A DNA stretch of 64,000 nt from Zygnema circumcarinatum SAG 698-1b (GCA_037447605.1 CM074809.1:1602689-1666688); one strand, 5' to 3'; positions 2,886 through 27,100 are shown, counted from the first letter of the stretch. Made by a program: numbers and translations. The notes: generated by a model not told the origin, from the sequence alone.

Positions 2886-3898
2886 GGCCGACCGGCAAGC
2901 AGCAAGCTCGAGGGAGTGAGGCAGGAGGCAGCCATGGCGGCCCTCAGGGCCCGCGCCACGTGGCCTCCATATCCGCACGGCAGCTGCCACGCTGGCGTGA
3001 AACCTGTACCGTATTGAGATATACGATATTTAGATAATATCGACTTCCTGAGTCTCGACATTGCTAGGGTCCGTGATGGAGGCGCACCAAAAACTTCCCG
3101 CGGCACTCCTCACATCTGACTCAGCCACTCACAGGACGCCACGTGGTTTCCTCCGACGTGGCCAGCCCCACAATGGACCTTACAATTTCGTATTGTCTGG
3201 CTGAAACGGCGGCAGAATTTGTCACAGAGGACGGACGAGGACGGTTCGGCGAAACCCCAATTGTACCCGACGGCCTAATTTTAAGGCTAATTTTGAAAAT
3301 TCGTACATCAACGCAGGAGCTCCAAGCTCATTTCAAAATGTTCATTGCTATTTTCACAAAAGGCCCATGAAGGGCGAGTGAACGGATAGTTCGATGCTAT
3401 TTAAGAAACAAAAAATAAGAACATTTTGTTGGCATCCCAATTCATTCATAGGATGGATCCACATCACAATCTTGGTCACCATGCGCCGTGTTAGTCGACC
3501 ATTTTATGAATGTTGTTGACCAAGTCGCAAAGTAAACTTGAAATTTGTGCACCTTTCACGTTCATTTGACAGACATAAGTCATAAGCCATAATGTCAGAA
3601 ATAAACTCTACGTATGAGAACCCCTGCACCGCAAGTCTAATTTGAAGTTGACGTTGTCACCCAACCAGATCATGCCAGATATCTTTTTTTTTTTTTTTGA
3701 AATTAAAGTTGAAGTAATGAATCTGGTGGAGAACCATCCAGAAAACAATGTACACTTCTCCCGCGCCCTTAAACCAAATGAAAATTTACAGAACCAAAAC
3801 CTTATAGCCCGCTCCTACGTACTATGTACAAAGCAAAAGAGAGGACAATCAAGAATCGTAACCGACCAAGCCGCCCTGCAAGCCCGTGGCCCTGCCCC

Positions 3899-5441
3899 TT
3901 ACGCCATGGTTTTGAATACGACGCACTGCCGCGCAGGCTCGAAGAGCTGCTCTTCATCCGGCGGCACATTGTATGCGCCGCCGGCTCCATATGGGATTCT
4001 TAACGCCGCAATGGGCAGCATGACGCAGCGGCCGAGGAAGAAGGGCAGACCAGGCGCGGCTTGGAATGTGCGCGCGTGCAGAACCGCATCTTCACCGTTA
4101 AGGAAGAACTGCTCCCCCGCACCCGCGCTCGGCGCAGGACACTCTCTGAAGAGGGCTGATCCCGAGCTGTCTACCTCTACCGCGAGCTCTGACCCCGTCT
4201 TATTTGTGCGGAGACCGGGGCTCAGGCGGCTCTGGTTGGGAGTTGAAAGGCTGAAAGTAGGTACTTCCGTGGCATAGCCTTCAAAGTAGAAGTCGCAAAG
4301 CTCGAGCGGAGTGGTTGGGCACGAGGTCATGCAGGGGGGAGGAGGGGGTGGAGGGGAAGGTGGAGGAGGGGGAGAGGGAGGTGGGAAAGGAGGAGGAGAG
4401 GGAGGGGGTGACGGAGGAGGAGAAGGAGGGGGGGAGGGAGGGGGCGAGGGAGGAGGTGAGGGAGGGGGTGAGGGAGGGGGCGAGGGAGGAGGCGAGGGAG
4501 GAGGTGAAGGAGGTGGCGAGGGAGGAGGTGAAGGAGGGGGCGAGGGAGGGGGAGAGTGTGGCGGAGGAGGTGAGGGAGGCGGCGATGGATCTGTCAAGTT
4601 GCAGGCGGCACCAGTCACTCCTTGAGGGCCGGTAGTGAACACGAGGCAGCGACGAGAGTCAGGGTACTGTTGCTGATTGTTGTCCCCCCAATTGAGGTTG
4701 ATGGGAGCGCCGTCGACTGTGACTCGTAAAGCCGTAAGGGGGATCACCATGCACGCATTCTCAAAGTGGACCTTTGATGGCTGCATGTGCCAATAACGAG
4801 GTCATGTATCATGTCATAATCTTCACCAAATCAACGTTTCTTCCCTCTTAGAAAGCCCAACGTATTAAAATACAATACCACTAGCATGAAGTCAGCAATA
4901 TTGCAGGGTGGCGCTTCATTCTCACCGTGTTGAAAGTGCGGAATTTGAGGTGCGCCTGCTCTTCGTTGACATAAAACTGGTTCCCCGCACTCGTCCCTAC
5001 CCTCCCCATGCAGAGGAAGGCGGCGTTGCCGGAACTGTCCACCTCAATGCTCTCTCCGTTTGTGGAATCCATCACGGGGGGGCCAACCGCCGTGTCAGGT
5101 TGCCCCTCCAGGCTGAATGGAACAGCTCATACGCATCATCAGGATGACGAATGTAAACCATACAAGAATGATACTTTTCTTTTGAGCTTGATTGGATTAT
5201 GTCTACCTCGCTGCTTTCCGCAGCATGGCCTGGACACCTACCTGATAACAGGAATCGACGTCTCGTAACCATCGAAGAAGAAATCGCAGTACTCCACGGG
5301 GCTGCTCGGACACTCTGTGAAGGCAGGCGTGAAGGAAGCTAAGAGGTTCCTCAATTGGCGGCCATCCGCTACGTGGACAGCAGCAAGGGAAAAGGCTACC
5401 ACGAGAACATTGACTAAGAAGTTCTCCCTAGAGATCCCCAT
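3899..5441 (-). CDS. Secreted dumbbell proline-rich glycoprotein: signal peptide, Cys-rich domain A, (PPPS)n rod, homologous domain B (~422 aa)
   Basis: Exons 5441-5242, 5112-4926 and 4780-3899, all GT-AG and in phase. Hydrophobic N-terminus MGISRENFLVNVLVVAFSLAAVHVADG. A ~75-aa SPPP repeat is encoded at ~4325-4590. TATA-like TATATAAA on the minus strand at ~5527-5534. Confidence 0.85.
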
Positions 5442-6749
5442 CGCCTCTGTGTTGCTGCTTGAAGAGGCGAGCCGTGCAGGAGGAGGCGGAGGTGGGCGCG
5501 CTGCCTGTCCACAGCAGCACAGACCCTTTATATACGGTAAGAAACGATACTCCCCGCCGGGCCGCGTGCCACCGCCGCCGCCTTCCGTTATGCCGCGTTG
5601 GGGCGTCAACCGTCGTTGACCGCGTTGACTGGCGGCGCCGTACGGCGGCGAGTGGCGACGGGGCGGAAGCCGCGGCGAAGGGGGGCGGTCCGATTGGATC
5701 GTACGGCCGCATGTCCTTGCATGGTCAATCTTGTTGCGTACTGGAATCTGAGGCCGCGTTAGGAAGGGGTCGCTCAAATGGCCATAGGTCGAGGGGGACC
5801 GGCGCGACGTGGTCCTACATTTTGTCATTGTCCGTACATGGCCCCGTTCATTGTGCGATGCCAATGCCAAGTCTTCCTTTTCTCGTCTCTTCTTGCGTCG
5901 TCTCAATCTCTCCTCTTCGGCCTTGAAAAAACTTGAAAAGAGAAATAGGGAAATGTGAGGAAGTGTGTTCTGAGAGCAGTACTTGGTGGCTTGAACAGTG
6001 CTGTAGGACCTGTCGCGGTCAGCTTCCGCGGCCGAGGGTGTCAGCGTCAGCGACCGGCTAGCGGTGATACGGCACCGAGGTTATTAAAAAGACGAGTCAA
6101 TTGCTAAAATGGCCTTGTTAGACCCTTAAAAACGAGTCAATTGCTAAAATGGCCTTGTTAGACCCTTAAAAAACTTAAAATCGACGACTCTCCTTATTGA
6201 TTGCTCTCTCTTTCTCTCACATTATTTTCATTCTCCATCTCTCTCTTTTTCTCGCTCGCTTGCTCTCCCTCTCTCACATTATCTACCTTCGTCATTCTCT
6301 TCTTGGTTGCCCGCCTTATGAAATTGAATAAGCTCGCATGTGAGAGTTGCAAGAGGAGGCGAAGCGACGGGATAGGGAAATGGACGCAAGGAGCTGAAGG
6401 TCGATAGCGGCCGCACGGCGGTGACGATAATGAAAACTAAAATTTTAGGGTTTTGATGTTTTCAGGGTCTAGCAGGTTAGGGGTTTCGGGGAGTATGGGT
6501 AGCGGAGGGCTTAGACTCGTTAGAGTTTAAGGTTTCGGGGATTTAGTGTTTTAGGGATTTGGGGGCTCAAATTAGAAGTTTATGGTTGCAGGGGTTACAG
6601 GTTTGAGGGGTTTATGTGGGTTCAAGCTTTAGGGGTTTTGGGTATTCATGATTCAAGGCGTTAGGGTTTTTGAGTTTAGCCATTACAAAGTTCACGGTTG
6701 AGGAGGGGTTCAGGGCCTCAGGGCTAGCGATTGCACGGAATGAGCGCAC

Positions 6750-7284
6750 GGTCGGTCCCCGCAGCCAACGGGCTCGCCACGTCAGCAGGCTGCCCGGGCA
6801 GCCACTTGGGCGGAGAGTGCTCCGGTTGGGCAAATTGCCACGTGGCGGCTCGTGGGAGATCCACCTCATAAGTGAGCGAGCCACGTCATACATGAGCCAC
6901 GTGTGGCCACGCCCAGCTGCGGGCGGCCAAAATTCCGGCGCGCACGCGTCTGTGCCGTCGGATGAGCCGTGGGCGGAAATGGGACGCTCTCCACCGTCGG
7001 ATGCGCCGCTGGGGCCCAAGGGAGGAACTCCGCCCGCCCTCGCCGCGGAAGTCAAGGGCGAGGCGCTCCGCCTTTAACGGGCCGTCAGCCCGTGGAAAGC
7101 CGCCACGTGCTTCCTAAAAAAGTGGAGCAACAGTCCGATAGGGACGGAGGGGGCCGTTCGCCGCTTGAACGCTCCGCCGCCTCGCCTGCGGGCTGCCTGC
7201 CTGCGCCCAGAAGGGGCAGGCCATGGCGGGAAGGGAGGGAGAGTGGCCACGGCTGCTGTTGCGACACTCGGAATGCCCCCCACC
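6750..7284 (+). promoter_or_regulatory. ACGT/G-box (ABRE-like)-rich promoter, homologous to 20285-20765 upstream of the second GDSL copy
   Basis: GCCACGTCAG, CCACGTGGC, CCACGTGTGGC and CCACGTG occur in a GC-rich block that aligns collinearly with the region upstream of copy 2. Confidence 0.6.
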
Positions 7285-10200
7285 ATGGCGAGGTCTCTGC
7301 TCCTCCTGCTGGGTGTCGCCATGGCGCTGCTGCACGCGCTCCCTGCAGGCGCTGTCCGCAGGAGCTTTGCGCTGCGGGGGAGGCGTCTCGCCGAAGTGGC
7401 CGCGACGTGCCCGCAGGCCGCGCTGGACTTGTGCAGCTTCTACTTCGAATGCCACGAGGAGGCGCCTCCCGTGATCGATCTGGACGGCGCGCCGGACCAA
7501 GCGGTGGGGCCCGCCTTGATGGCGAAGGACGCGAGCACGGGGAAGGGCGTGCCGGCGGTGGTGGCCAGCACGGGCGAGGCGACGTCTCTATGCGGCAGCG
7601 CAGTCAGCCTCGGCGACCAGTTCTACATAACGGGACAGCCCTCACACGTGCACGTCCGCGCCTTCAACAAGGTAACTCCTCCTCGTCCACTTCCTCCTTC
7701 CCTTCTTTCTCCTCCTCCTCCGCCGCCTTCTCAGTTCTTCCATTCTTCACACCTCCTAGTTCCTGAGACCCCTCCTCTATTTCACTGAATATTTGTTTCC
7801 ATGGCGGACGGCTTGCGAAGTGCAGCCCCCGAAGTCTGCCTTCGAGAGCAAGTGCGTGCTCCTTCCCCTCAGAGGAGTGCGCGCAGGCGGGCTCAACCTG
7901 AACCCTGGCGACGCCAACCAGGCGGCCTTCCCCGAGGCGCGCCGCTGCGTCGTCTTCTCCACCGGTCCCTCGCCCGCCTGCGGACAGCTCTCGCCCTCCG
8001 CACCTTCCCCTCTCCTTTCCCCTCCCGCTCCTCTCCCTCCTCCTCCGCAGCCTCGCCTTGCCCCCTCTCCCACCTCGTTTCCCGTTCCCACACCCTCCAT
8101 CCCTCGCACAAACCTCCCCACTCCCGCTCGTGCGCCCTGCGACACTCCCTCGTCGAGCCCGTTCTCCGCGATGTTTGCATTTGGGGACAGTACGCTTGAC
8201 ATAGGAAACAACAACGATATAGTCGGCAGTCCGTTAAAAGCGAACTTCCTGCCATACGGCATTGACTACATTCCCGCCAGCGGCCGCGTCACCAACGGAA
8301 AGGGCTTCGTAGACCTGCTTGGTGCGCGCAACAAATGATTTTTTATGTTCTATTGGCTTTCGTGCTTGATTGCTTTACTTTTGTTGTTCTTTGCCTGACT
8401 CTCTGTTGTGCGTGCCTGCCTTTGCGGCTGCCCCTGCTCCACTTTTGGAGTTGCTGAAAACTCGCCTTGTTTCCTTGCTCTGTGGCGTCTTTATAACAGT
8501 GGAGCTCTTAGGACTCCCTCCCGTGCCCAAATACGAAGATGCGAATGCGAATTCTTCATCGGACTACTTTTCTGCCGGGATCAATTTTGCCTCAGTGGGG
8601 TCAGGGGTACTCTCCACGACAAACTGCATGGCGGTAAGCTGGGGTCCATCCCCCCATTTCCGCCACACCCCCCTTTTGTTCTGATTGGCTGTCACACATG
8701 CAATAGTTAAGTATATTGTTTGGGTGGTTGATTCTATTTGGATAGCCGTCTTTCCGCGTGCAGGATACAATTTGCTTTTCACTCAGTTTCCAAGTTATCC
8801 AGTTTCTGGCTGCGAGTATGAGCTATACTGCAGAGGTGAGTATCTGTTGCAGTCCCATGTCAGAGCATAGGTCATTCATACTTCACTCTTACCACCTTTT
8901 AAACTGCATTGGCATTCTCTTCATGACTCGTCCCTGGCATGACTCCCTTGTTAATCGAGATGTATAATGCCGCACGGCATAAGAAAGTCATTATCATCTG
9001 GAATTCGCTCTCATCCAATGCAACGCCTTTGGGTGCACGGTTTGGGAGAGTTCAGGAGAAGGCTTCGAGTCTGTTCATCCTTTCAACGGGAGGAAACGAC
9101 TACTTTCCCTATTTCAGAAATTCGTCAGCATACAACATTACGGAATACGTTGGGAGTGTGATTAATGGGTTTGCTGAGACATTCCAGGTTAGTTTAAGCA
9201 TAGTGTGGCACATGAAGACTCAGGAAATGAGATATGGCCGGCCAATGGTATTCTGTGTCTGTCCTCTGACTCAATAATTCTTCGGATAGAGAGGAGTAAA
9301 CGTTGCCGTTCGGCATTTAGAGCACGACCTTAGTGATGCTTCGATCATGCAAAGGGTTCTTTCACCATGAAATCTGCAATCTCAGCCCTAAATGAACCAT
9401 CTCATGCAATCTTTGGAGCGAACCAAACCAGACCAGTCATCAGACCGTTTGATGAACTGCATAAGGCACATAACTCTCTCGTATTTAAGTCTCCACAGTT
9501 CTGTTGTATCAGCAGAGTGCTGGCAACTTACTATCATTCGAGTAGAGCCTCCTCCGCATCCACGTGACGCAGACAGTGTTCAACATTTGACATTTTCTAC
9601 AACGAATCTTTTGCTTCTGCTTGCTTTCCTCTCCGTTTTTACAGACCCTGTATGCCGCGGGTGCCCGAAAGTTCATTGTCTTTGAGCTGCCCGACCTCGG
9701 ATGCACGCCTGCTTTGCTCGCCACTGCCAATGCGTCGGAGTCGAACCCTCACTGCCTCACCTTCACCACTCCCCTCGTCACAGCACACAATGCAGCCCTG
9801 GAAAGCCTCCTCATCGGACTCCGACAACTGCTTCCCGGAGCATACTTCACACGATTCCGTGCCCAAGAATACATCCACAACATTACCTCAAATCCAGGCA
9901 GCTTCGGTAAGTGCCACGAATCATGCATGTGGAATGTGAAATTATTCAATTTTTTTCTTAATTTGGCTTCTCGTCCCTCTCCAATTCAGGTCTTCGAGCA
10001 GGCCCCCCCTGCCATCACAAAGCCATAGAGATCCCTAATCTGCCCCCTTGAATCCGCCACGTACAGATAAATAGTCACGATGTGTTGCCTGCCTGGTGGT
10101 GCCTCCCATTGCCTGCATGCATGCAGGCCTCTCCAACGGATTTGATGCGTGCTGTGGAGGCGGACTCTTTGGCGGCGAGATTAACTGCGGCCTCCCTTCA

Positions 10201-10350
10201 GCGAGTGTGTGCGCGGACCGCGCCGAGTACGTGTGGTGGGACTCTCTGCACTTGACGCAGGTCGTCATAGAGGACATCGCAAGGCGGGCGGTGGAGGGCG
10301 ATGGCGAATACGTGCAGCCCTATAGCCTCACCACCTTGGCGCTTCTTTAG
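7285..10350 (+). CDS. Secreted GDSL/SGNH esterase-lipase with an N-terminal unassigned Cys-rich domain and proline-rich linker (~568 aa)
   Basis: Exons 7285-7671, 7826-8321, 8500-8633, 8764-8835, ~9056-9187, 9645-9906 and 10127-10350. Signal peptide MARSLLLLLGVAMALLHALPAGA. GDSL blocks FAFGDSTLDIGNN, PYGID, GRVTNGK, GINFASVGSG, GGNDY, LYAAGARKF and WWDSLHLT (catalytic S and DxxH intact). Confidence 0.92.
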
Positions 10351-13098
10351 GGTTTTCTTTCTAAAAATTTTCCTTTCGAGCTTTCTCCGTGTTCAGTGTG
10401 GCCATGGTTGGTTGTTGCGGCTGTAAAGGCTGAGAGAGTGGCAGCCAGTAATCAGGCAGGAGCGCGTGAGGGTTAATTATGGCGGTTGTTTGATTTGGTC
10501 TGGTGAAGTTGTGTGGGTTTTAAGGACGAGAGGTCGCAGGTTTGTTTCGTGTAGATCGCACGTAGATTGCGGCTGAAGTACGTACATCTTCCTTGTGTTA
10601 TTCAATTATTTTTTAGAGGAATTGTATATTTTTTTTTGTGTTCGCAGTTGTTTAGGGCCAGAAGTGGAAGAAAGAAACAGTTTGCCTGCTTTGCTATCTC
10701 GGTGCAGTGCCCGCTCGCGCCGCTCGCCTTGCGAGCCCTGCTCCCTCCAAAAGTGTCTCAGTGCCATATTCGGTGTTGCGGTTGTAGAATTGGGCCGTAT
10801 TTCTCTCTCAGTATCTTCTATCTCATGCTTAGAAGCCTTTCCTTTCCTAAACATATTCAAGAGTCTCAATCATACAAGGAACAACACATATATCCACAAA
10901 AACTTTATTCCAGAATTGAACGAGAGCTTAAGCATCCTATGCTTCTCTCAACGCTCCGGTTGACAAAGTTACAGAAAACAGTAATCTTATACATGTCCTT
11001 CCTAAAACCTCGCCGCCAAAAGCATAACATGATGAACAACATGAACCATTCGATCAGAGGGTCTTGGGATTCACACCACTTGCTAACACTCGACACGTGT
11101 GACTACGTTCGTACACTCCCGTACATAAATTTTGTACAAGATTTCCGTATGATTCTATGTCCGATTTACGGATCTCAACAGCGGTACCCACTGGATTTCT
11201 GCTATGTGAAACTGCGACAGTTGCTCCAAACGCACGACGGCTTAACTTGGTGTCCGCACTACCTTTAACTAAAGTTCAGCCTCGACAGACATCGGAACAT
11301 CTCCCTGAGGGAGTGGAAAAGCCGCTGGGACGGTCCACAACGAAAGTGGCTCGCAAAAGTCCCAACATGTTTGCAAATAGTACACAGGTCGGACCCATGG
11401 ATGGCAATGGTTGGACGTCTAATGGTTCGGAATCATTCGAACGGTTGCCAACCATTCGAATGGTTGTTTTGGCCCGGCGCCAATGGTTGGATCAACCATT
11501 GGAATGGTTGATCTGATGGCCCGACCTATGAAATAGTGTACAGGTCGGACACAGGCAAATGGTGTGCTATACTCTTTAGTTCGGGGAACCAACACGGCAG
11601 GGCGCCCTACTGCAGTCGTTCCTTTTATATAATATGTCATTTGGCATGTTTAATTCTGCTGATAGAGATTGCTAGAAGCAGGCTGAAGAGTCTCACAACC
11701 TCTCAAGGCTGACTCCGTTCCCGTCAGTTTGTGGAGCTGACCATTTCAAGAACGTGCGTTAAATGCCGAAGCTAACCACAAGCACAAGAATAAAAAATAA
11801 CTGCCCGAGCATAATACGCATGTCTAAGGTACACGCTTCCGCAAAATAGGAAGGTCCAAAATTGAGTATCAAGCCATCAAATGGTGTAATGGCTCCCGAG
11901 GACTGTGCAGCACATGCAACTTGCATTACAACTACAAAAGTTGCATTTGAAGGGCAACAAGGGCAAATGGAAGATGGCACAAGGAATGAAAAAAGACACA
12001 TAGTGGGTATTGCACACTTGTTGCTACATAGTTAGTTCGTAGTGGGTGGTTTTCTAGTGCTAGTGCAACACTGGGTACTAAGAAAGCAGAGAGTGCTTGA
12101 GGGACTTCATAGTGCGACAAGTTCTGGGGCGTGCGACAGGTTCCCGTACGGGCGTACGGACGGACCGTACGGGCGTTTGGATTGTCCTTTTACCTTGTGG
12201 AACATTCTGGTGGGTGTACGAGCTTTAGTCCGCGGTGCTTTCTCTTACTCCTTGGCTGTGAGATTCTCCATTGGTGTTCGTCTAATTCTAGCTATATTTC
12301 ATTGGAGTTTGATTTTGTGCTTCCGCAGGTGTGGACATTGCCTCTCTGGCTAGTAGAGATATCTTCCACTTCCACTAGTGCAGGGGGTGGGTCCACATCA
12401 ACACATTTTGTGTGGTGCTTGTTGTATAGGAGTGCAAGCGGGACAAAGGAAAAGAATGTTCCCGATTGGCTATTTGATGCAACGCCCGCATGCTCCATTG
12501 CATTGTGTAAGCGTCCCCATAAAATACTGAATACTTTTTGTTGTTGAACTCCGTCTTTTCCGGTGCGTTTCTTCGCGATGCGATGCTGTGTTACATTCAC
12601 ATGATTCTGGAATTGCCTTTTGCTGCATCATTCCCAGTTTATATTTTCATTTTCTCGTAGTACAAATATGAGGCATAGGCAGGGGAGACGCATGCGGAAT
12701 AACCCCTTCAATCCTGAAAGCCGTATGGGGCTGCTTTGACGGACGAGACATTCAGTGTTCCTTTGTACTGGAAACTTCCCGTTGCTGTCAAGGCAATGGG
12801 TACTTATTGGGAGGAATGACTGAATATGAAATTACATAGTGTACATTTGGTGCCTATCTGTGCTAGTTTAATAAACTTGAACTTCCAAACTAGTCTGGAA
12901 ATGTCACTGTGCACAAGTTTACTGTCATTGTCATTGAACCCGAGACACCTTTTAGCTTACATCCCTTAAATACCCAAAAAGCAAATGATCTGATAAACAA
13001 ACGCAAAAAAATGCTCCTGTCCTGTCCGTACTGCTCCCCAATAAATATATGAAAGAATGGCACAACCTCAATTGTATGCACAGAAACAAAAAGTGTCG

Positions 13099-19447
<6,349 letters not shown>

Positions 19448-20873
19448 GGCGGCCTCGAGAGGCGGCGCGCCGCCCAGGATAGGAACAGGAAAGGAACAGG
19501 AAGGGAAGGGAAGGGAAGGGAAAGGGAAGGGAAGAGAAGGGAAAGGGAAGGGGAGGTGCAGGTTGGATGGGTCGGGATCGAACTCGCAGAGGTGCCACGT
19601 GGCAAGCGTAGCGTACACTTCACGGCGTTCCGTCCAGCTGGCAGCCGCGCCGCCCCGGTGGGGTTGACACGTGGCCTCTGGCAAGTTGCGTGCCTCGGAA
19701 GGCGGGACGCGTGCCCTCGCCGTGCCCCGCCACGTGGCTACGCCCCTCCACGAATCCGCGAACATAGGCGAACATTTGCGCAGGTCGCACCACTGGACCA
19801 ACCATTGTATCGCGGACCCAGCCAACCATTGTCAATGGGCGGAACCATTGGATGGATGTCGGCGCCGGACCAAAACAACCATTGCCAATGGTCGCAATCA
19901 TTCCAATGTTTCGGAACCATTGGCGCCGGACATGCTTGGTTGGACAAGAAGAAAGGCTGGTTTTTCCTAGCCGCCAAAATCATTTTCTGAAAGAAAGCTT
20001 TGAATGGGAAGTGCATTCAACACACTTTTGCATTGAACTCAAAGAAAGTATTTGGAGACGGGGAAAGTTGAATGAATTTCTCGAAATTCGGGACTCCCAT
20101 TCGGCGTTCGGACCCGAATAGAAAATTGGGGTAAACTAACGCGATCCGATCTACGAACTAAACGCCGCCACGTGGCACTCCGCGACCCTCGTCATCCAGT
20201 CTCTACGCTGTCCAAGCTAAGCTTGAGCTTTTGTGGATACAGTAGTCGGAAGCGCGGTTCGACTAGGCAGCGGGCAGGCCATGTCAGCAGGCCACGTCAG
20301 CAGGTTGCCGGTACAGGCTACCGGGGGGACCTCTGAACGGCCATGTGGCAGCTCATGGGTGATCCACGTCATGAACGAGATAGCCACGCCATACATGAGC
20401 CACGTATGGCCACGCCCAGCCGCGGGCGGCCATAAATTCCGGCGCGCACGCTTCCGTGCCGTCGGATACGCTACGTGCGCGAATGGGACGCTCTCCGCCG
20501 TCAGATGTGGCGCGGGGCCCTCGCCATGAAAGTCAAGGGCGAGGCGCTCCGCCTTTAACGGGCCGCCAGCCCGTGGGAAGCCGCCACGTGTTCCCTAAAA
20601 AAGTGGAGCGACGATCCGATAGGGACGCAGGGGGCCGTTCGCCGCTCGAACGCTCCGCCGCCTCCCTGGCGGGCTGTCTGCGTGCGCCCATAAAGGGCAG
20701 TCCATGGCGGGGAGGGAGGGAGGGAGGCTGTAGCTGCTGCTGCGACACTCAGACTGCACCCCGCCATGGCGAGGTCTCTGCTCCTCCTGCTGGGTGTCGC
20801 CATGGCGCTGCTGCACGCGCTCCCTGCAGGCGCTGTCCGCAGGAGCTCTGCGCTGCGGGAGAGGCGTCTCGCC

Positions 20874-22422
20874 TGTTGGAAACTAGAGCCTGGTCTCTCT
20901 CACTTGCTGCACTCTCAGACATCCTTGCACTTCAGCGAACACACCCTCCCCAATGCACACACCGGAAAGAGAGAATGAAGACTGAAGAAGAAAAGACACC
21001 GAGAAGTGAAGTAAGAGGAGAAAGCCCCACCGGCTCAAAACTCCTTAAAATAGATAAGAAGGGTTACACACAGAAACTCAGCCCTCAAGCGATTCCTACT
21101 GCTCTGCCCTACACACCTATCTACTGCTGCCCATACAGCAGGCCTCTACACTCAGCACCACAAGCCGAGATGCAAGGTTCTAAGGGTTACTAGCACTATG
21201 CACTAAGCAAACTAAATACTAGCCGCTGAAGCACCTCCACGTTCCACCGCGTGCCACCGCGTTCCACCTCCATGTCGTCGAGGTCGCTCCGCGCCTTCTA
21301 GAGTTCGTTTCGCGCCGCGCGAGAGCTCAGCTCGGGAGGCCGCCATGGGGAGGGGAGTGTCCGTACCGAAACTCCCTTCCAAAAGCTCCTCCGTCGCTCC
21401 GAACCTTCCGCGCTCCTTCGCGCCTCCAATAATCCGTACTAAGCTAACTCATAGCCGCGCGACCTATCGTCGCGCACCACGTGTCCACACAACACTTATA
21501 AAACTAAGCGGACTCCACTGGTGGTGCGGCCTATTGCCGCCCGCCACGTGTCTAATTCAAACCTGAAAGTCTTCCGACTCAGAACAGCGCTCTAGCGCAC
21601 TGTTCAGACTGTGACTGTATCTACCAAGGACCGCCGTCTCGGCTAAGGACCGTAAAGTGTACTACATTGTACTATACCCCTATTGTACACTACAAGAGTG
21701 AGGGAAGAGAGAGAGAGGAAGAGAGAGAGAGGGAAAGAGAGGGAGACAGAGAGTGAGAGACGGTTAGAGTGAGAGGAGCGGTAGAGAGTGTTCATGCTAT
21801 TCATTTCTTTTTAGCACCTTACAATATAGTCATATTTGCAGAGATTATTAGTCATCGTTAGTGATCTGCAGTGGTGTGATCTGCGAGGGAATCAACAGCT
21901 GCGANNNNNNNNNNACTAGCACTATGCACTAAGCAAACTAAATACTAGCCGCTGAAGCACCTCCACGTTCCACCGCGTACCACCGCGTTCCACCTCCATG
22001 TCGTCGAGGTCGCTCCGCGCCTTCAGGAGTTCGCTCCGCGCCGCGCGGGAGCTCAGCTCGGGAGGCCGCCATGGGGAGGGGAGCGTCCGTACCGAAACTC
22101 CCCTCCGAAAAGCTCCTCCGTCGCTCCGAACCTTCCGCGCGCCTTCGCGCCTCCAATTATCCGTACTAAGCTAACTCATAGCCGCGCGACCTATCGTCGC
22201 GTGCCACGTGTCCACACAACACTTATAAACCTAAGCGGACTCCACTGGTGGCGCGGCCTATCGCCGCCTGCCACGTGTCCTATTCAAACCCGAACGTCTA
22301 CTGACTCAGAACAGCGCTATAGCGCACTGTTCAGACTGTGACCGTATCTACCAAGGACCGCCGACATCGGCTAAGGACCGTAAAGTGTACTACGTTGTAC
22401 TATACCCCTTTTGTACACTACA
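20874..22422. mobile_element. LTR retrotransposon-type insertion (two related LTRs, internal region mostly in an assembly gap)
   Basis: TG at 20874 and CA at 22422, flanked by a 5-bp TSD TCGCC (20869-20873, 22423-22427); the uninterrupted site is at ~7388 in the paralog. LTR1 is 20874-21694. LTR2 (21915-22422, left end in the gap 21905-21914) matches LTR1 from 21189 onward. Confidence 0.88.
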
Positions 22423-24166
22423 TCGCCGAAGTGGCCGCGACGTGCCCGCAGGCCGCGCTGGACCTGTGCAGCTTCTACTTCGAATGCCACGAGGAGGCGC
22501 CTCCCGTGATCGATCTGGACGGCGCGCCGGACCAAGCGGTGGGGCCCGCCTTGATGGCGAAGGACGCGAGCACGGGGAAGGGCGTGCCGGCGGTGGTGGC
22601 CAGCACGGGCGAGGCGACGTCTCTATGTGGCAGCGCAGTCAGCCTCGGCGACCAGTTCTACATAACGGGACAGCCCTCACACATGCACGTCCGCGCCTTC
22701 AACAAGGTAACTTCGTCTGGCCCTTTCCGCATAGCGTTCTCTTCCATACCTGCTGGCTGATGTGTACAATAGGGGTATAGCCCCGAATAGTACACCGTAC
22801 GGTCCTTAGCCGTTGTCGTAGGTCCTTAGGAGATTCGGTCCGGGCGTGGACCAACCGACAGTCTTTGTCCCCTAGTGGGAACACTTAGAACTAGTCCTTT
22901 GGCCACGTGGCGAGCAGCTATAGGCCGCGTCGACACTGGAGATATTTAGAGTCGTTAAGGATGTTATGACACGTGGCGCGCAGCGATAGGCTGCGCGTAC
23001 GACCTAGGTTTGCTTATTGTTTCTTTGGGTCGACCGTACATTAGTCCGGTGCGTACGGACGAACGCTGGAGTGGCGCGCGCGTTGTCGAGGAAGCTTCTC
23101 GAAGGAAGGCAAGTCGGAGGAGGAGCTTTCTGTACGGACACTCCCCCTCCTGGCCATGGCGACCTAAGGAGGAATTACCGCGAGGAGAGAGGCGAGCGCC
23201 TGGAGACGTGGAGCGTCGCCAGCGACATGGAGGTGCGCGGTGGAACGCGGTGGCGTGCGGTGCAGCGCGGTGGCGAGACATGGCATGCATTAGAACGTGG
23301 AGTAGTGCAGCGCTTAGTACTTAAGTAGGGTTAGACTTAGGTGATTGTAATCTTAATACAGTTACAGCTTAGCTCGTGTTGCTAAGTGTAGTTGCCTGGC
23401 TGTATGGGCAGCAGGGGGTCGGGAGTTAGTCAGAGCTGAAGTAGAAGCCTGAGGGCTGAAACTTGTGCTTGTAACTTCCTTTACTTTATTAAGGAGTTTT
23501 GAGGCCGGGTGCTTTCTCCTTACATTTCCTTACGGTGTTCTTTGCTCATTTGATTTCAGTTATCTTTCAGTGTGTGCACTTGAGAGCTTTCCTTGATTCA
23601 GATTGCAAACATGGCAGTGAGTGAAGTGAGTGAGACGGACCGGGCCTTAATTTACAACAGGCCGGCCTATCGCCGCCTGCCACGTGTCCTATTCAAACCC
23701 GAACGTCTACTGACTCAGAACAGCGCTATAGCGCACTGTTCAGACTGTGACCGTATCTACCAAGGACCGCCGACATCGGCTAAGGACCGTAAAGTGTACT
23801 ACGTTGTACTATACCCCTTTTGTACACTACATCGCCGAAGTGGCCGCGACGTGCCCGCAGGCCGCGCTGGACCTGTGCAGCTTCTAGTTCGAATGCCACG
23901 AGGAGGCGCCTCCCGTGATCGATCTGGACGGCGCGCCGGACCAAGCGGTGGGGCCCGCCTTGATGGCGAAGGACGCGAGCACGGGGAAGGGCGTGCCGGC
24001 GGTGGTGGCCAGCACGGGCGAGGCGACGTCTCTATGTGGCAGCGCAGTCAGCCTCGGCGACCAGTTCTACATAACGGGACAGCCCTCACACGTGCACGTC
24101 CGCGCCTTCAACAAGGTAACTTCGTCTGGCCCTTTCCGCATAGCGTTCTCTTCCATACCTGCCGGC
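22254..24166 (+). repeat. ~504-bp direct duplication (22254-22757 and 23663-24166) flanking the inverted solo LTR
   Basis: Constant offset of 1409 nt. Three substitutions seen between the copies: TAC/TAG, ATG/GTG and CTGGC/CCGGC. Confidence 0.9.
22758..23659 (-). mobile_element. Solo LTR of the same family in inverted orientation
   Basis: Begins TGATGTGTACAATAGGGGTATAG, the reverse complement of the LTR1 end CTATACCCCTATTGTACACTACA. Ends ...TTTACAACA, resembling the reverse complement of TGTTGGAAAC. ~900 bp, TG...CA, no clean TSD. Confidence 0.8.
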
Positions 24167-27100
24167 GTGCTGCGATGTATTTCAAATTAAGTGGCGGCAT
24201 TTATGGCTTGCAGGCTCCGCGCGCGGCCTTTGAGAGCGAGTGCGTGGGGCTGCCCCTCACGGCCGTGCGCGTGGGCGACCTCAACCTCCGGCCTGGCGAC
24301 GCCCACCAAACCGCGTTCCCTGACGCGCGCCGCTGCGTGCTCTTCGCAACCGGCCCCTTGCCCGCCTGCGCACGCAATCATCCTCCCACGCCTTCACCGC
24401 CTCCGCCTTCGTCGCCCCTCCCCCACATTCCCAAATCATACTTTTCCCCCTTTTTGCCGGGGCCATTCGCCGCGCTGTTTGCATTTGGAGACAGTACTAT
24501 TGACATAGGAAACAACAACGATATAGCCGCAAGCCCATTCAAGGCGAATTTCCTTCCGTACGGCATCGACTACATACCCGCCAATGGCCGCTTCACGAAC
24601 GGAAAGTCCCCCATGGACTACGTAGGTGCGCGCAACAATTCTTGTTGATGCTTTACTGCTTTCGTGCTTCATTGCTATTTTTTTCTATGCTTTGGTTGCT
24701 TTTCAGCTATCGCTTGCGCACCCTTGCCTGCCTCTTCGGCTGATCCTGCTTCACTTTCGTAGATGCTGAGCACTTACCGCTTTTTCTTCCTCCGCGACGT
24801 CTTGTAACAGCGGAGTTCTTAGGACAACCTCCGGTGCCCAAATACGACGATTCAAATGCGACTACTTCAGCAGATCACTTTTCTGCAGGGATCAATTTTG
24901 CCTCAGCGTGGTCAGGGGTCCTCACAGAAACAAACTGCATGGCGGTAAGCGGAGGTCCCACCCCCCCATACCCCCTTACTTTTCTGGGTTGCCTATTCGA
25001 CATGTGTGTAGTAAATATTACTGACATTTGGTTCTGTTTGGGTACTCGTTTTTCAACGTGCAGGGAACACTTTGCCTTTCACTCAGTTTCCAAGTTAGCC
25101 AGTTCCTGGCTATGTGTTCGAACTACACTGCAGAGGTGAGTATCCCGTGCATCCTAATTTCAGAGCATTGGCCATACTTAACACTCATTTCAAAAGAAAG
25201 TGCATTGACATTCTCTTCATGACTCGTGCCTGCATGGCTTATGAACCGAGTTGTAGTATCGCACGGCATAAGGAGGTCACTATCAGCTGAATACTGCTCT
25301 GATAAATTGCAATGCCTTTGCGTGCATGAATTGGGAGAGACCAGGAGAAAGCGACGAGTCTATTCATCATCTCATCGGGAGGAAGTGACTACTATTCATA
25401 TTTTGCGAATCCGACAGCAATCAATGCAACAGAATTTGTAGGCAGAGTGATTGATGGACTCGCTGAGACATTGCAGGTGAGAGTAAGTACAGCATGACAG
25501 TTAGTAGGTAGTAGTAGTGTGGATTCAGGAAATGGCTAGTCAGTTCTTCGCTGTCTGTCAGCTGTTGCAAAAATGAATCTGATGGAGGAGAGCGAATTTT
25601 GCCACACGTTCGATCATGATTCTATCATGCAAACGGTTGTTTTCATCTTTCAGTCTGCAAATCTCAAATCTTAACAAGCCATCTCAGCAACTTTGGGACA
25701 AAAAGCTGATCAATTGAAAAGTAATTCACAACTAGAGAATGGAATCATGAATCGGTCACAATTTCTTCTAGGTCTCCTCCGTTCCGTTTTATTCGCAGAG
25801 TGTTGGCACCTCACTACCAGCCGAGTATACCCTCCTCGCCTCCTTGTGAAGCAGACAATCTTGAACACTAACTCGCTGCTACATGATTAATCGGTTAATG
25901 TTTTGTTCCCCTTCCTTTGACAGACTCTGTATGCCGCTGGCGCTCGCAAGTTCCTTGTCACTGAGCAGTATGACATCGGTTGCTCGCCTTTCTTCCTCGC
26001 CTCTTCGAATGTGTCGGAGTCGAACTCTCAGTGCCTCACCCTCGCCACTCCCCTTGTCACAGCACACAATGCAGCCCTAGGACGCCTTCTGGTCGAACTG
26101 CAAGCACGGCTCGTAGGAGCATACTTCACACGTTTCCGTACCCAAGAATACATCTATCACATCACCTCAAATCCAGGCAGCATCGGTAAGTGCCATGCCT
26201 ACTACTCACGCAATCATGAATGTTCGCGAAAACTCCCCGTTGTCACTCTGCAAACATCATTGAATTTTCACTTTTTCATCTCTCTGTCCAATTCATGTTG
26301 CCGAGCTGCTCCCCCATGAACAAGGGGGTTTCCTAATATGTCCTTTGAATCCGTGAAGAACAGATACGATTCTCACAGTGGTGCCCACTGCAGGCCTGTC
26401 CAACGGGTTTGAGGCGTGCTGTGGCGGCGGCCGCTTTGGCGCCGAGATCGAGTGCCGCCTTCCCTCGGCGACGGTGTGCGCGGACCGCGACCAGTTCGTG
26501 TGGTGGGACGGCGGCCACTTGACGCAGGCCGTCTATCGCGACATCGCAAAGCGCCTCGTGGAGGGCGACAGCGGCTTGGTGGCGCCCTACAGCCTCGACG
26601 CCATGGCGCTCCTTTAGGGCCTCTCTTCGAGCCCTTCTCGTCGCTGCGGTTCTGGCTCTTAAAACCCTACGAGCGAGGGCCGGCCTTCTGGCAGGTGCGC
26701 AAGGGAGGTTCAGGAATGGCCATGCGTTGTTGGGCCGGCTGGGGTTTCTGGTGATTGCTTTAGGTTTGTGAAGGAAGGTACTGCTGTAGACTCCTTCCGT
26801 GTGGAGCGAGAAGAGATCGTGGTCAAGCGGAAACGCATCTTGTCGCTGTAGTTGTGCCACTTTTGACGGAATGTATTAAGGGGTTCCTTTTGTGTGAATG
26901 CTTTTGAACGAGAGTGGAAGTGAGGCGAAGTAGAAGTGTACCCCCTTGGTGGTTTGATGCAATACCCCGCGTGCTCCAATCTAAATAACCCTAAAAGCCC
27001 TAAAATACCCTAAAAAACGCTAAAATCCCTAATAACCTTAAATATCTTGAAAACCTTGTCGAACTGTCCGCATACAATACGAATTGTTTGTGTTGTTAGC

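Follow-up and report, generated by a model that had tools for sequence, protein, structure and literature searches.

What is the cysteine-rich domain of some 140 residues that recurs in neighbouring genes of the streptophyte alga Zygnema circumcarinatum SAG 698-1b? The domain occurs in a stretch of 64,000 nucleotides (GCA_037447605.1 CM074809.1:1602689-1666688; hereafter the window), which is eukaryotic in character, with spliced genes and a GC content of ∼50%. Three genes carry it: gene 1, which encodes a proline-rich glycoprotein with two copies (domains A and B), gene 2, which encodes a GDSL esterase with one copy (domain C), and gene 3, which is paralogous to gene 2. A first-pass annotation, based on an alignment by eye, had proposed that the copies represent an unassigned extracellular domain that binds the wall or matrix and has been shuffled between a structural protein and an enzyme. 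The data presented here show that the domain is genuine, ∼140 residues long and so far unannotated, and we estimate a probability of about 0.58 that it is a wall- or matrix-binding anchor.

Gene 1 (3899..5441, minus strand; coding sequence join(5441..5242, 5112..4926, 4780..3899), with splice sites assigned by direct reading) encodes a protein of 422 amino acids, in which a signal peptide is followed by domain A, an (SPPP)n rod and domain B. Its translation is an open frame of 423 codons, including the stop. Domain A (4625..5324, residues 40-181) is distributed over three exons (5324-5242, 5112-4926 and 4780-4625). Domain B (3902..4333, residues 279-422) is intronless, forms the extreme C-terminus of the protein and stops two residues past its last strand. 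The proline-rich rod between the two (4591-4334, residues 193-278, 86 residues) consists mostly of SPPP repeats, evident in the translation and in a 12-nucleotide periodic repeat of the DNA (D2). Gene 2 (7285..10350, plus strand) encodes a signal peptide, domain C (7396-7671 and 7826-7975), a proline-rich linker and a GDSL esterase. Its first exon (7285-7671) comprises 129 codons, its second exon starts at 7826 after an AG, its stop codon is at 10348-10350, and its exons are collinear with the homologues P0001 and P0003 as far as 10347 (tblastn). The previously noted phase-0 intron 129 codons past the ATG of both genes is exact, interrupting domain C at 7672-7825 and gene 1 after precisely 387 nucleotides; gene 1 has one extra intron, of phase 2, after codon 66. 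The junctions of gene 1 also fit when its product is aligned with that of gene 2 and with homologues derived from transcripts, and the latter are continuous across the exon junctions (RTFNYPTK..., RAFNQPPK...), which lends these boundaries indirect support. About half of the words sampled from 3850-9800 occur in the runs X2-X7.

A six-frame motif scan recovered the four-copy motif set at the positions originally claimed. The motif CPx6CxF[YF]F[DE] is located at 5312-5271 and 4321-4280 on the minus strand and at 7408-7449 and 22443-22484 on the plus strand, G[NDE]QF[YF] at 4985-4971, 4117-4103, 7612-7626, 22647-22661 and 24056-24070, and C[VL][VL]FxT at 4648-4631, 3925-3908, 7946-7963 and 24334-24351. 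The three intact domains are homologous, with a similarity far above chance. Pairwise blastp aligned A with C (42% identity, E=7e-41), A with B (37%, E=4e-29) and B with C (35%, E=2e-19), in each case over ∼140 residues, a significant similarity that removes the concern that copies matched by eye might be unrelated. All three also match the family profile (A4) over its positions 3-145 in local hmmsearch runs (domain A, E=2e-47; domain C, E=2e-40; domain B, E=9e-38). The hallmarks of this profile are C-P-x6-C-D-F-x-F at the N-terminus, QF[YF] in the centre and NLNPGD...P-x2-RRC-V-V-F-x-T at the C-terminus, with the cysteines C2 and C5 invariant. A tblastn search detected no extra domain copies elsewhere in the 64-kb window.

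The proposal that the domain is unassigned also withstood searches for a described family. Five pieces of the window, and with them its domain copies, matched no Pfam family at E≤10, and 63 family members yielded two chance-level Pfam matches only, with the domain region itself unmatched. Neither a single domain nor, at E≤10, the family profile matched a PDB sequence, and searches of the literature brought no account of the domain to light. A word-indexed protein search returned nothing for domain B, eight matches for the profile and, for the family member P0080, only P0080 itself. An identification of P0080, P0078 and P0025 with AlphaFold DB matches of equal length was considered and proved unsupported, P0080 being a EukProt transcript.

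The domain nevertheless belongs to a sizeable family. An exhaustive HMMER search with the window copies as the profile, an approach envisaged in the first-pass annotation, was run against 1.84 billion representative sequences and retrieved 109 proteins at E≤1e-3, of which 48 reached E≤1e-10 and four E≤1e-30. Organisms were looked up for 30 of these 109 clusters. Eleven of the 30 had a named organism, in every case a streptophyte alga: Mesotaenium endlicherianum (P0002, P0004 and P0037), Netrium digitus (P0011 and P0024), Chlorokybus atmophyticus (P0027 and P0099) and four Closterium strains (P0045, P0082, P0085 and P0105). The other 19 are transcriptome or metagenome entries. No land-plant, chlorophyte or red-alga name was encountered within the looked-up set of 30. 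In NCBI the family members are labelled ‘unnamed protein product' or ‘hypothetical protein', and identity between the proteins of the window and their matches does not exceed about 50-55%.

The family displays a range of architectures in which the domain is joined to unrelated partners. A signal peptide, the domain, a proline-rich linker and a GDSL esterase, the order seen in genes 2 and 3, occur in P0001, P0003 and P0006. In P0037 and P0045 a TAXi-type aspartic protease (Pfam TAXi_N/TAXi_C/Asp) is followed by a proline-rich linker and a C-terminal domain; in P0004 and P0027 the domain is fused to a thioredoxin (Pfam Thioredoxin); and P0002, P0005 and P0007 contain tandem or rod-separated domain pairs as in gene 1, with P0005 and P0007 showing that domain-rod-domain proteins exist in other species too. 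The most elaborate architecture seen is that of P0008, a transcript-derived protein of 1379 amino acids with two domain copies, a GHHPPG-type His/Pro/Gly repeat, a long proline-rich region and, at its C-terminus, an aspartic protease of the TAXi type (Pfam TAXi_N/TAXi_C/Asp). Many further members have only 150-220 amino acids, comprising a signal peptide and a single domain, and these include P0082 and P0105, small secreted proteins from the Closterium peracerosum-strigosum-littorale complex, whose sex pheromones are secreted proteins. The domain adopts one of two placements. When N-terminal it directly follows the signal peptide and leads into a few Gly/Pro residues that terminate in Cys (approximately G-P-x2-5-C) and then into the proline-rich linker; when C-terminal it lies at the extreme end of the protein, preceded by a linker of this kind. 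Of 76 complete instances, 58 have the end of the domain within 12 residues of the protein C-terminus.

The catalytic identity of the partner in genes 2 and 3 is clear. The open reading frames of gene 2 contain the GDSL/SGNH blocks GDSxxDxGNNN, GGND and DxxH (FAFGDSTLDIGNNN, GRVTNGKG, TGGNDYF and WWDSLHLT), so that blocks I, II, III and V, with their Ser, Gly, Asn and His, identify the partner domain of both genes as a GDSL/SGNH esterase. The single GDSL exons of the window are too short for Pfam matches; the collinear homologue P0001 matches Lipase_GDSL (PF00657) with E=4e-28.

No catalytic feature is conserved in the domain itself. This, together with proline-rich linkers that connect it to unrelated enzymes and to copies of itself, and its occurrence at either terminus, favours a role in binding or anchoring, and by analogy the arrangement of domain and linker is the one by which targeting or binding modules are built into proteins. 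In the mechanism that we propose, the domain would be a non-catalytic and portable unit with a binding partner in the cell wall or in the secreted matrix, and the enzymes that it anchors (esterase, aspartic protease and thioredoxin) would thereby be kept at their site of action. It would tether the GDSL esterases of genes 2 and 3, and the two-headed gene 1 protein, whose copies are spaced by an extensin-like rod, might cross-link the matrix. In the zygnematophyte Penium, the secretome and extracellular polymeric substances include a GDSL esterase (PMC6027541).

The same architectures bear on two other roles, both of which are less likely than a role in adhesion, the main rival, which is considered below with the predicted fold. 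The domain could regulate the enzyme within the same protein, as a pro-domain, chaperone or inhibitor whose removal or displacement would end its control. Its position in the GDSL enzymes, N-terminal and directly after the signal peptide, resembles that of a pro-region. In the aspartic proteases and most members, however, the domain is C-terminal; two copies are present in the enzyme-free gene 1 protein, and the long proline-rich linkers to its partners suit tethering better than occlusion of an active site. Such a regulatory role thus appears very improbable. The other role is that of a secreted signalling ligand, for instance in mating or stress communication in Closterium, with the enzyme fusions being secondary. 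The many small members with a signal peptide and one domain, several of them from Closterium (including P0082 and P0105), would suit a ligand, and Closterium is known to use secreted sex pheromones (PMC5736609). The window's own copies, however, sit in a structural protein and in enzymes rather than in small ligands, and we regard this explanation as highly unlikely.

The cysteines of the domain follow a simple rule. Its conserved core consists of C2 (59/59), C5 (60/60), C1 (54/57), F14, P24, R135, the QF[YF] strand and the terminal NLNPGD...P..RRCVVF.T. When the flanks are included, 22 instances have four cysteines and 29 have six, these two numbers together accounting for 51 of 71. C1, C2 and C5 are constant, and domains with four cysteines have one of C3 and C4. 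Where both C3 and C4 are present there is one extra cysteine, making six in total, in 20 of 23 such cases; its place is immediately ahead of C1 where the domain is of the C-terminal type (B, for example), and ∼8-12 residues past C5 where it is of the N-terminal type (A and C, for example). This maintenance of parity is as expected of a secreted domain in which all cysteines form disulfides. The products of genes 1 and 2 have hydrophobic N-termini, and the sequences are thus consistent with the earlier view that the domain is probably secreted and disulfide-bonded.

When presented with the window copies alone, AlphaFold returned a model with a predicted local distance difference test score (pLDDT) of 35.5. 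Given 63 homologues, it produced a confident model of domain B (pLDDT 91.9, predicted template-modelling score 0.87) with approximately eleven strands and one short helix. Foldseek comparison of the model with PDB retrieved antibody V-domains only (template-modelling (TM) score ≤0.38), a search of Swiss-Prot models retrieved only immunoglobulin (Ig) V-set proteins (TM ≤0.39), and a fold search of the ESM Atlas gave TM scores no higher than 0.51. The top structural neighbours are cadherin extracellular (EC) domains; examples of these and of other Ig-like or E-set β-sandwich domains are 8tri, 5szq and the SusE-like BT4661 (4ak1). The Foldseek results therefore point to a β-sandwich of the Ig/cadherin/E-set class without a specific solved or characterised relative. 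The domain is thus predicted to have an all-β, Ig/cadherin-like fold; the Ig-like/E-set class is defined by a two-sheet Greek-key sandwich of 7-10 strands. A ricin-type or β-trefoil lectin, a fold marked by a threefold internal repeat and QxW motifs, was suggested by a feature lead in the Atlas (score only 0.83-0.86) and rejected, as the model is a sandwich and none of the fold searches returned a trefoil.

The cadherin neighbours raise the main alternative to anchoring, in which the domain is a protein-protein adhesion or self-assembly module, possibly calcium-dependent like the cadherins, that builds the extracellular matrix in the manner of the Volvox pherophorin heads, with the fused enzymes merely incorporated into the network. 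The dumbbell layout of gene 1 and of P0005 and P0007 fits such a role, as does a conserved loop of acidic and amide residues, NLNPGDxN, between the last two strands. Judged by cadherin sequence motifs, a Pfam Cadherin match and a clear structural match, however, the domain does not qualify as a cadherin EC domain. Overall, we consider adhesion rather unlikely.

The predicted fold also bears on whether the domain is simply a very divergent member of a described binding-module family, such as a CAZy carbohydrate-binding module (CBM) or an E-set/Ig family, beyond the reach of sequence models. No fold class is more common among CBMs and E-set modules. Against this, none of the 63 members has a Pfam match to the domain, the family profile found nothing in PDB, and the low Foldseek scores against both PDB and Swiss-Prot models extend the negative result to structure; moreover, the best fold matches are themselves uncharacterised. 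This explanation is therefore improbable.

Those best matches overall are uncharacterised AlphaFold DB proteins that align, by fold alone, over nearly the whole domain with a probability of 1.00 and 16-21% identity. Their TM scores are 0.62 (A0A835YRB6 and R7Q9E1), 0.57 (A0A7S1XGZ4 and A0A2V3IQ34) and 0.44 (D7FPM5), with E values of 5e-4 to 4e-3 for those at 0.57-0.62. From the accession series we take R7Q9E1 to be from Chondrus crispus, A0A2V3IQ34 from Gracilariopsis chorda, D7FPM5 from Ectocarpus and A0A835YRB6 from Tribonema, so that the matches would presumably derive from red, brown and yellow-green algae. The first-pass annotation had remarked on a resemblance to secreted proteins of red algae and raised the prospect of an ancient or horizontally shared family. 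As all named sequence relatives are streptophyte algae, and the origin of the fold matches is presumed, the resemblance survives as a lead at the level of fold only; for horizontal transfer the analysis offers nothing in support. A broader scenario remains tentative, and on balance we doubt it: the domain would be an ancient algal binding module, representing a new carbohydrate- or matrix-binding family common, at the fold and perhaps the sequence level, to streptophyte, red, brown and yellow-green algae; in the algae most closely related to land plants it would fasten esterases, proteases and redox proteins to the wall, and the rise of land plants would have brought its loss or replacement.

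Several observations weigh against the anchor proposal. No ligand site was identified in the domain. In domain B the most conserved loop of the family, NLNPGD, is replaced by NVPPDE. The fusion of the domain to enzymes with very different substrates would fit an interaction or regulatory module equally well, and the many small stand-alone secreted members are left unexplained by anchoring alone. If the domain does anchor proteins to the wall or mucilage, it would constitute a new binding-module family and a handle on algal wall polymers. Any account of the origin of the land-plant cell wall and its enzymes takes zygnematophytes and other streptophyte algae as its reference, and the partner enzymes described here (GDSL esterases, apoplastic aspartic proteases and thioredoxins) are prominent in the biology of the land-plant wall and cuticle; the algal ancestors would then have tethered these enzymes in a manner apparently absent from land plants. 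With the confident structural model and the clear cysteine rule, the binding hypothesis can be tested directly.

The product of gene 1 shares with the pherophorins of Volvox and Chlamydomonas a dumbbell plan of signal peptide, globular domain, (SPPP)n rod and globular domain, and is presumably likewise located in the extracellular matrix. The likeness is confined to this plan: the heads of the gene 1 protein are unrelated, with no match at E≤10 to the pherophorin Pfam domain (PF12499), the organism is a streptophyte and not a chlorophyte, and the same head occurs on enzymes. Enzymes of the CBM-linker-catalytic domain type offer a second parallel, since in them too a Pro/Ser-rich linker joins a small β-sandwich module, placed at either end and paired with varied partners, to a catalytic domain. 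Unlike these modules, however, the Zygnema domain falls into no CAZy or Pfam CBM family, and its partners are an esterase, proteases and a thioredoxin rather than glycosidases; the module-linker-enzyme architecture is the only analogy, and carbohydrate binding by the domain is putative. Finally, genes 2 and 3 share the SGNH blocks of their catalytic part with the land-plant GDSL esterase/lipases (GELPs). In known land-plant GELPs the catalytic domain directly follows the signal peptide, and the N-terminal module with its proline-rich spacer would therefore appear to be an algal peculiarity.

The claim of modularity is supported by the occurrence of the same domain on GDSL esterases, aspartic proteases and thioredoxin, and on copies of itself, and the phylogeny agrees with shuffling between genes 1 and 2. 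In a maximum-likelihood tree domain A falls inside a clade of GDSL-fused domains that includes gene 2, with support of 99/98, and domain B has no firm place among the domains of C-terminal type. The arrangement of genes 1 and 2 is head-to-head, with their start codons 1843 nucleotides apart (window 5441-7285), and both begin with a signal peptide, the domain and an intron after codon 129, a layout that suggests the 5′ module was duplicated locally, in inverted orientation. Together, the tree, the common intron position and the head-to-head arrangement suggest that gene 1 may be a fusion product, in which a duplicated GDSL-type 5′ end was joined to a rod and a C-terminal-type domain.

Gene 3 (20766..26617, plus strand), delineated by blastn against gene 2, tblastn and junction sequences, qualifies the claim that two GDSL-fused copies are present: the copy in gene 2 is intact, but that in gene 3 is not one intact unit, as its first exon is split and the N-terminal half of its domain is doubled. 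As assembled, exon 1 is broken after 20873, and the downstream GDSL exons look intact. The insert in exon 1 (20874..22422, 1.55 kb) has TCGCC at both borders, a possible target-site duplication, and holds an assembly gap (21905-21914). The 508 nucleotides to the right of this gap (21915-22422) directly repeat 21189-21694 with 94% identity, and the two sides therefore overlap and do not continue one another; this has the look of overlapping contigs that were left unmerged, or of a tandem copy. The first copy of the N-half exon (22425..22706, plus strand) is intact and 98.9% identical to gene 2 at the DNA level. The second copy (23834..24115, plus strand) contains an in-frame TAG (23885-23887) and lies within a 99.4%-identical repeat (22254-22757 and 23663-24166) whose units start 1409 nucleotides apart, and an inverted copy of the ends of the insert is located between the two exons. 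The C-half of the domain (24217..24357, plus strand) is single and open, with a nonsynonymous divergence (dN) from gene 2 of 0.21 and a synonymous divergence (dS) of 0.65, a dN/dS of ∼0.33. Identity between genes 2 and 3 reaches 98-99% in exon 1, compared with ∼75-77% in later exons (dS 0.4-0.65), which points to a recent gene conversion or an assembly mix-up limited to exon 1. The region 20766-24370 could thus reflect gene conversion with transposon-mediated rearrangement, or an assembly artefact around the gap.

A second gap (15448-15457) follows a C/T-rich microsatellite and lies between two exons of a glycoside hydrolase family 1 (GH1) gene. Neither gap touches a domain copy, and no copy was read across a gap. 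The GH1 gene, which encodes a β-glucosidase, occupies ∼14700-19700 on the minus strand between the two GDSL genes. Two of its exons (14732-15055 and 16100-16345) match Pfam PF00232, and an exon near 19400 probably encodes its signal peptide. The region of this gene also contains an array (16382-16689) with 6- and 12-nucleotide periodicity and 16 overlapping copies of a 110-nucleotide unit.

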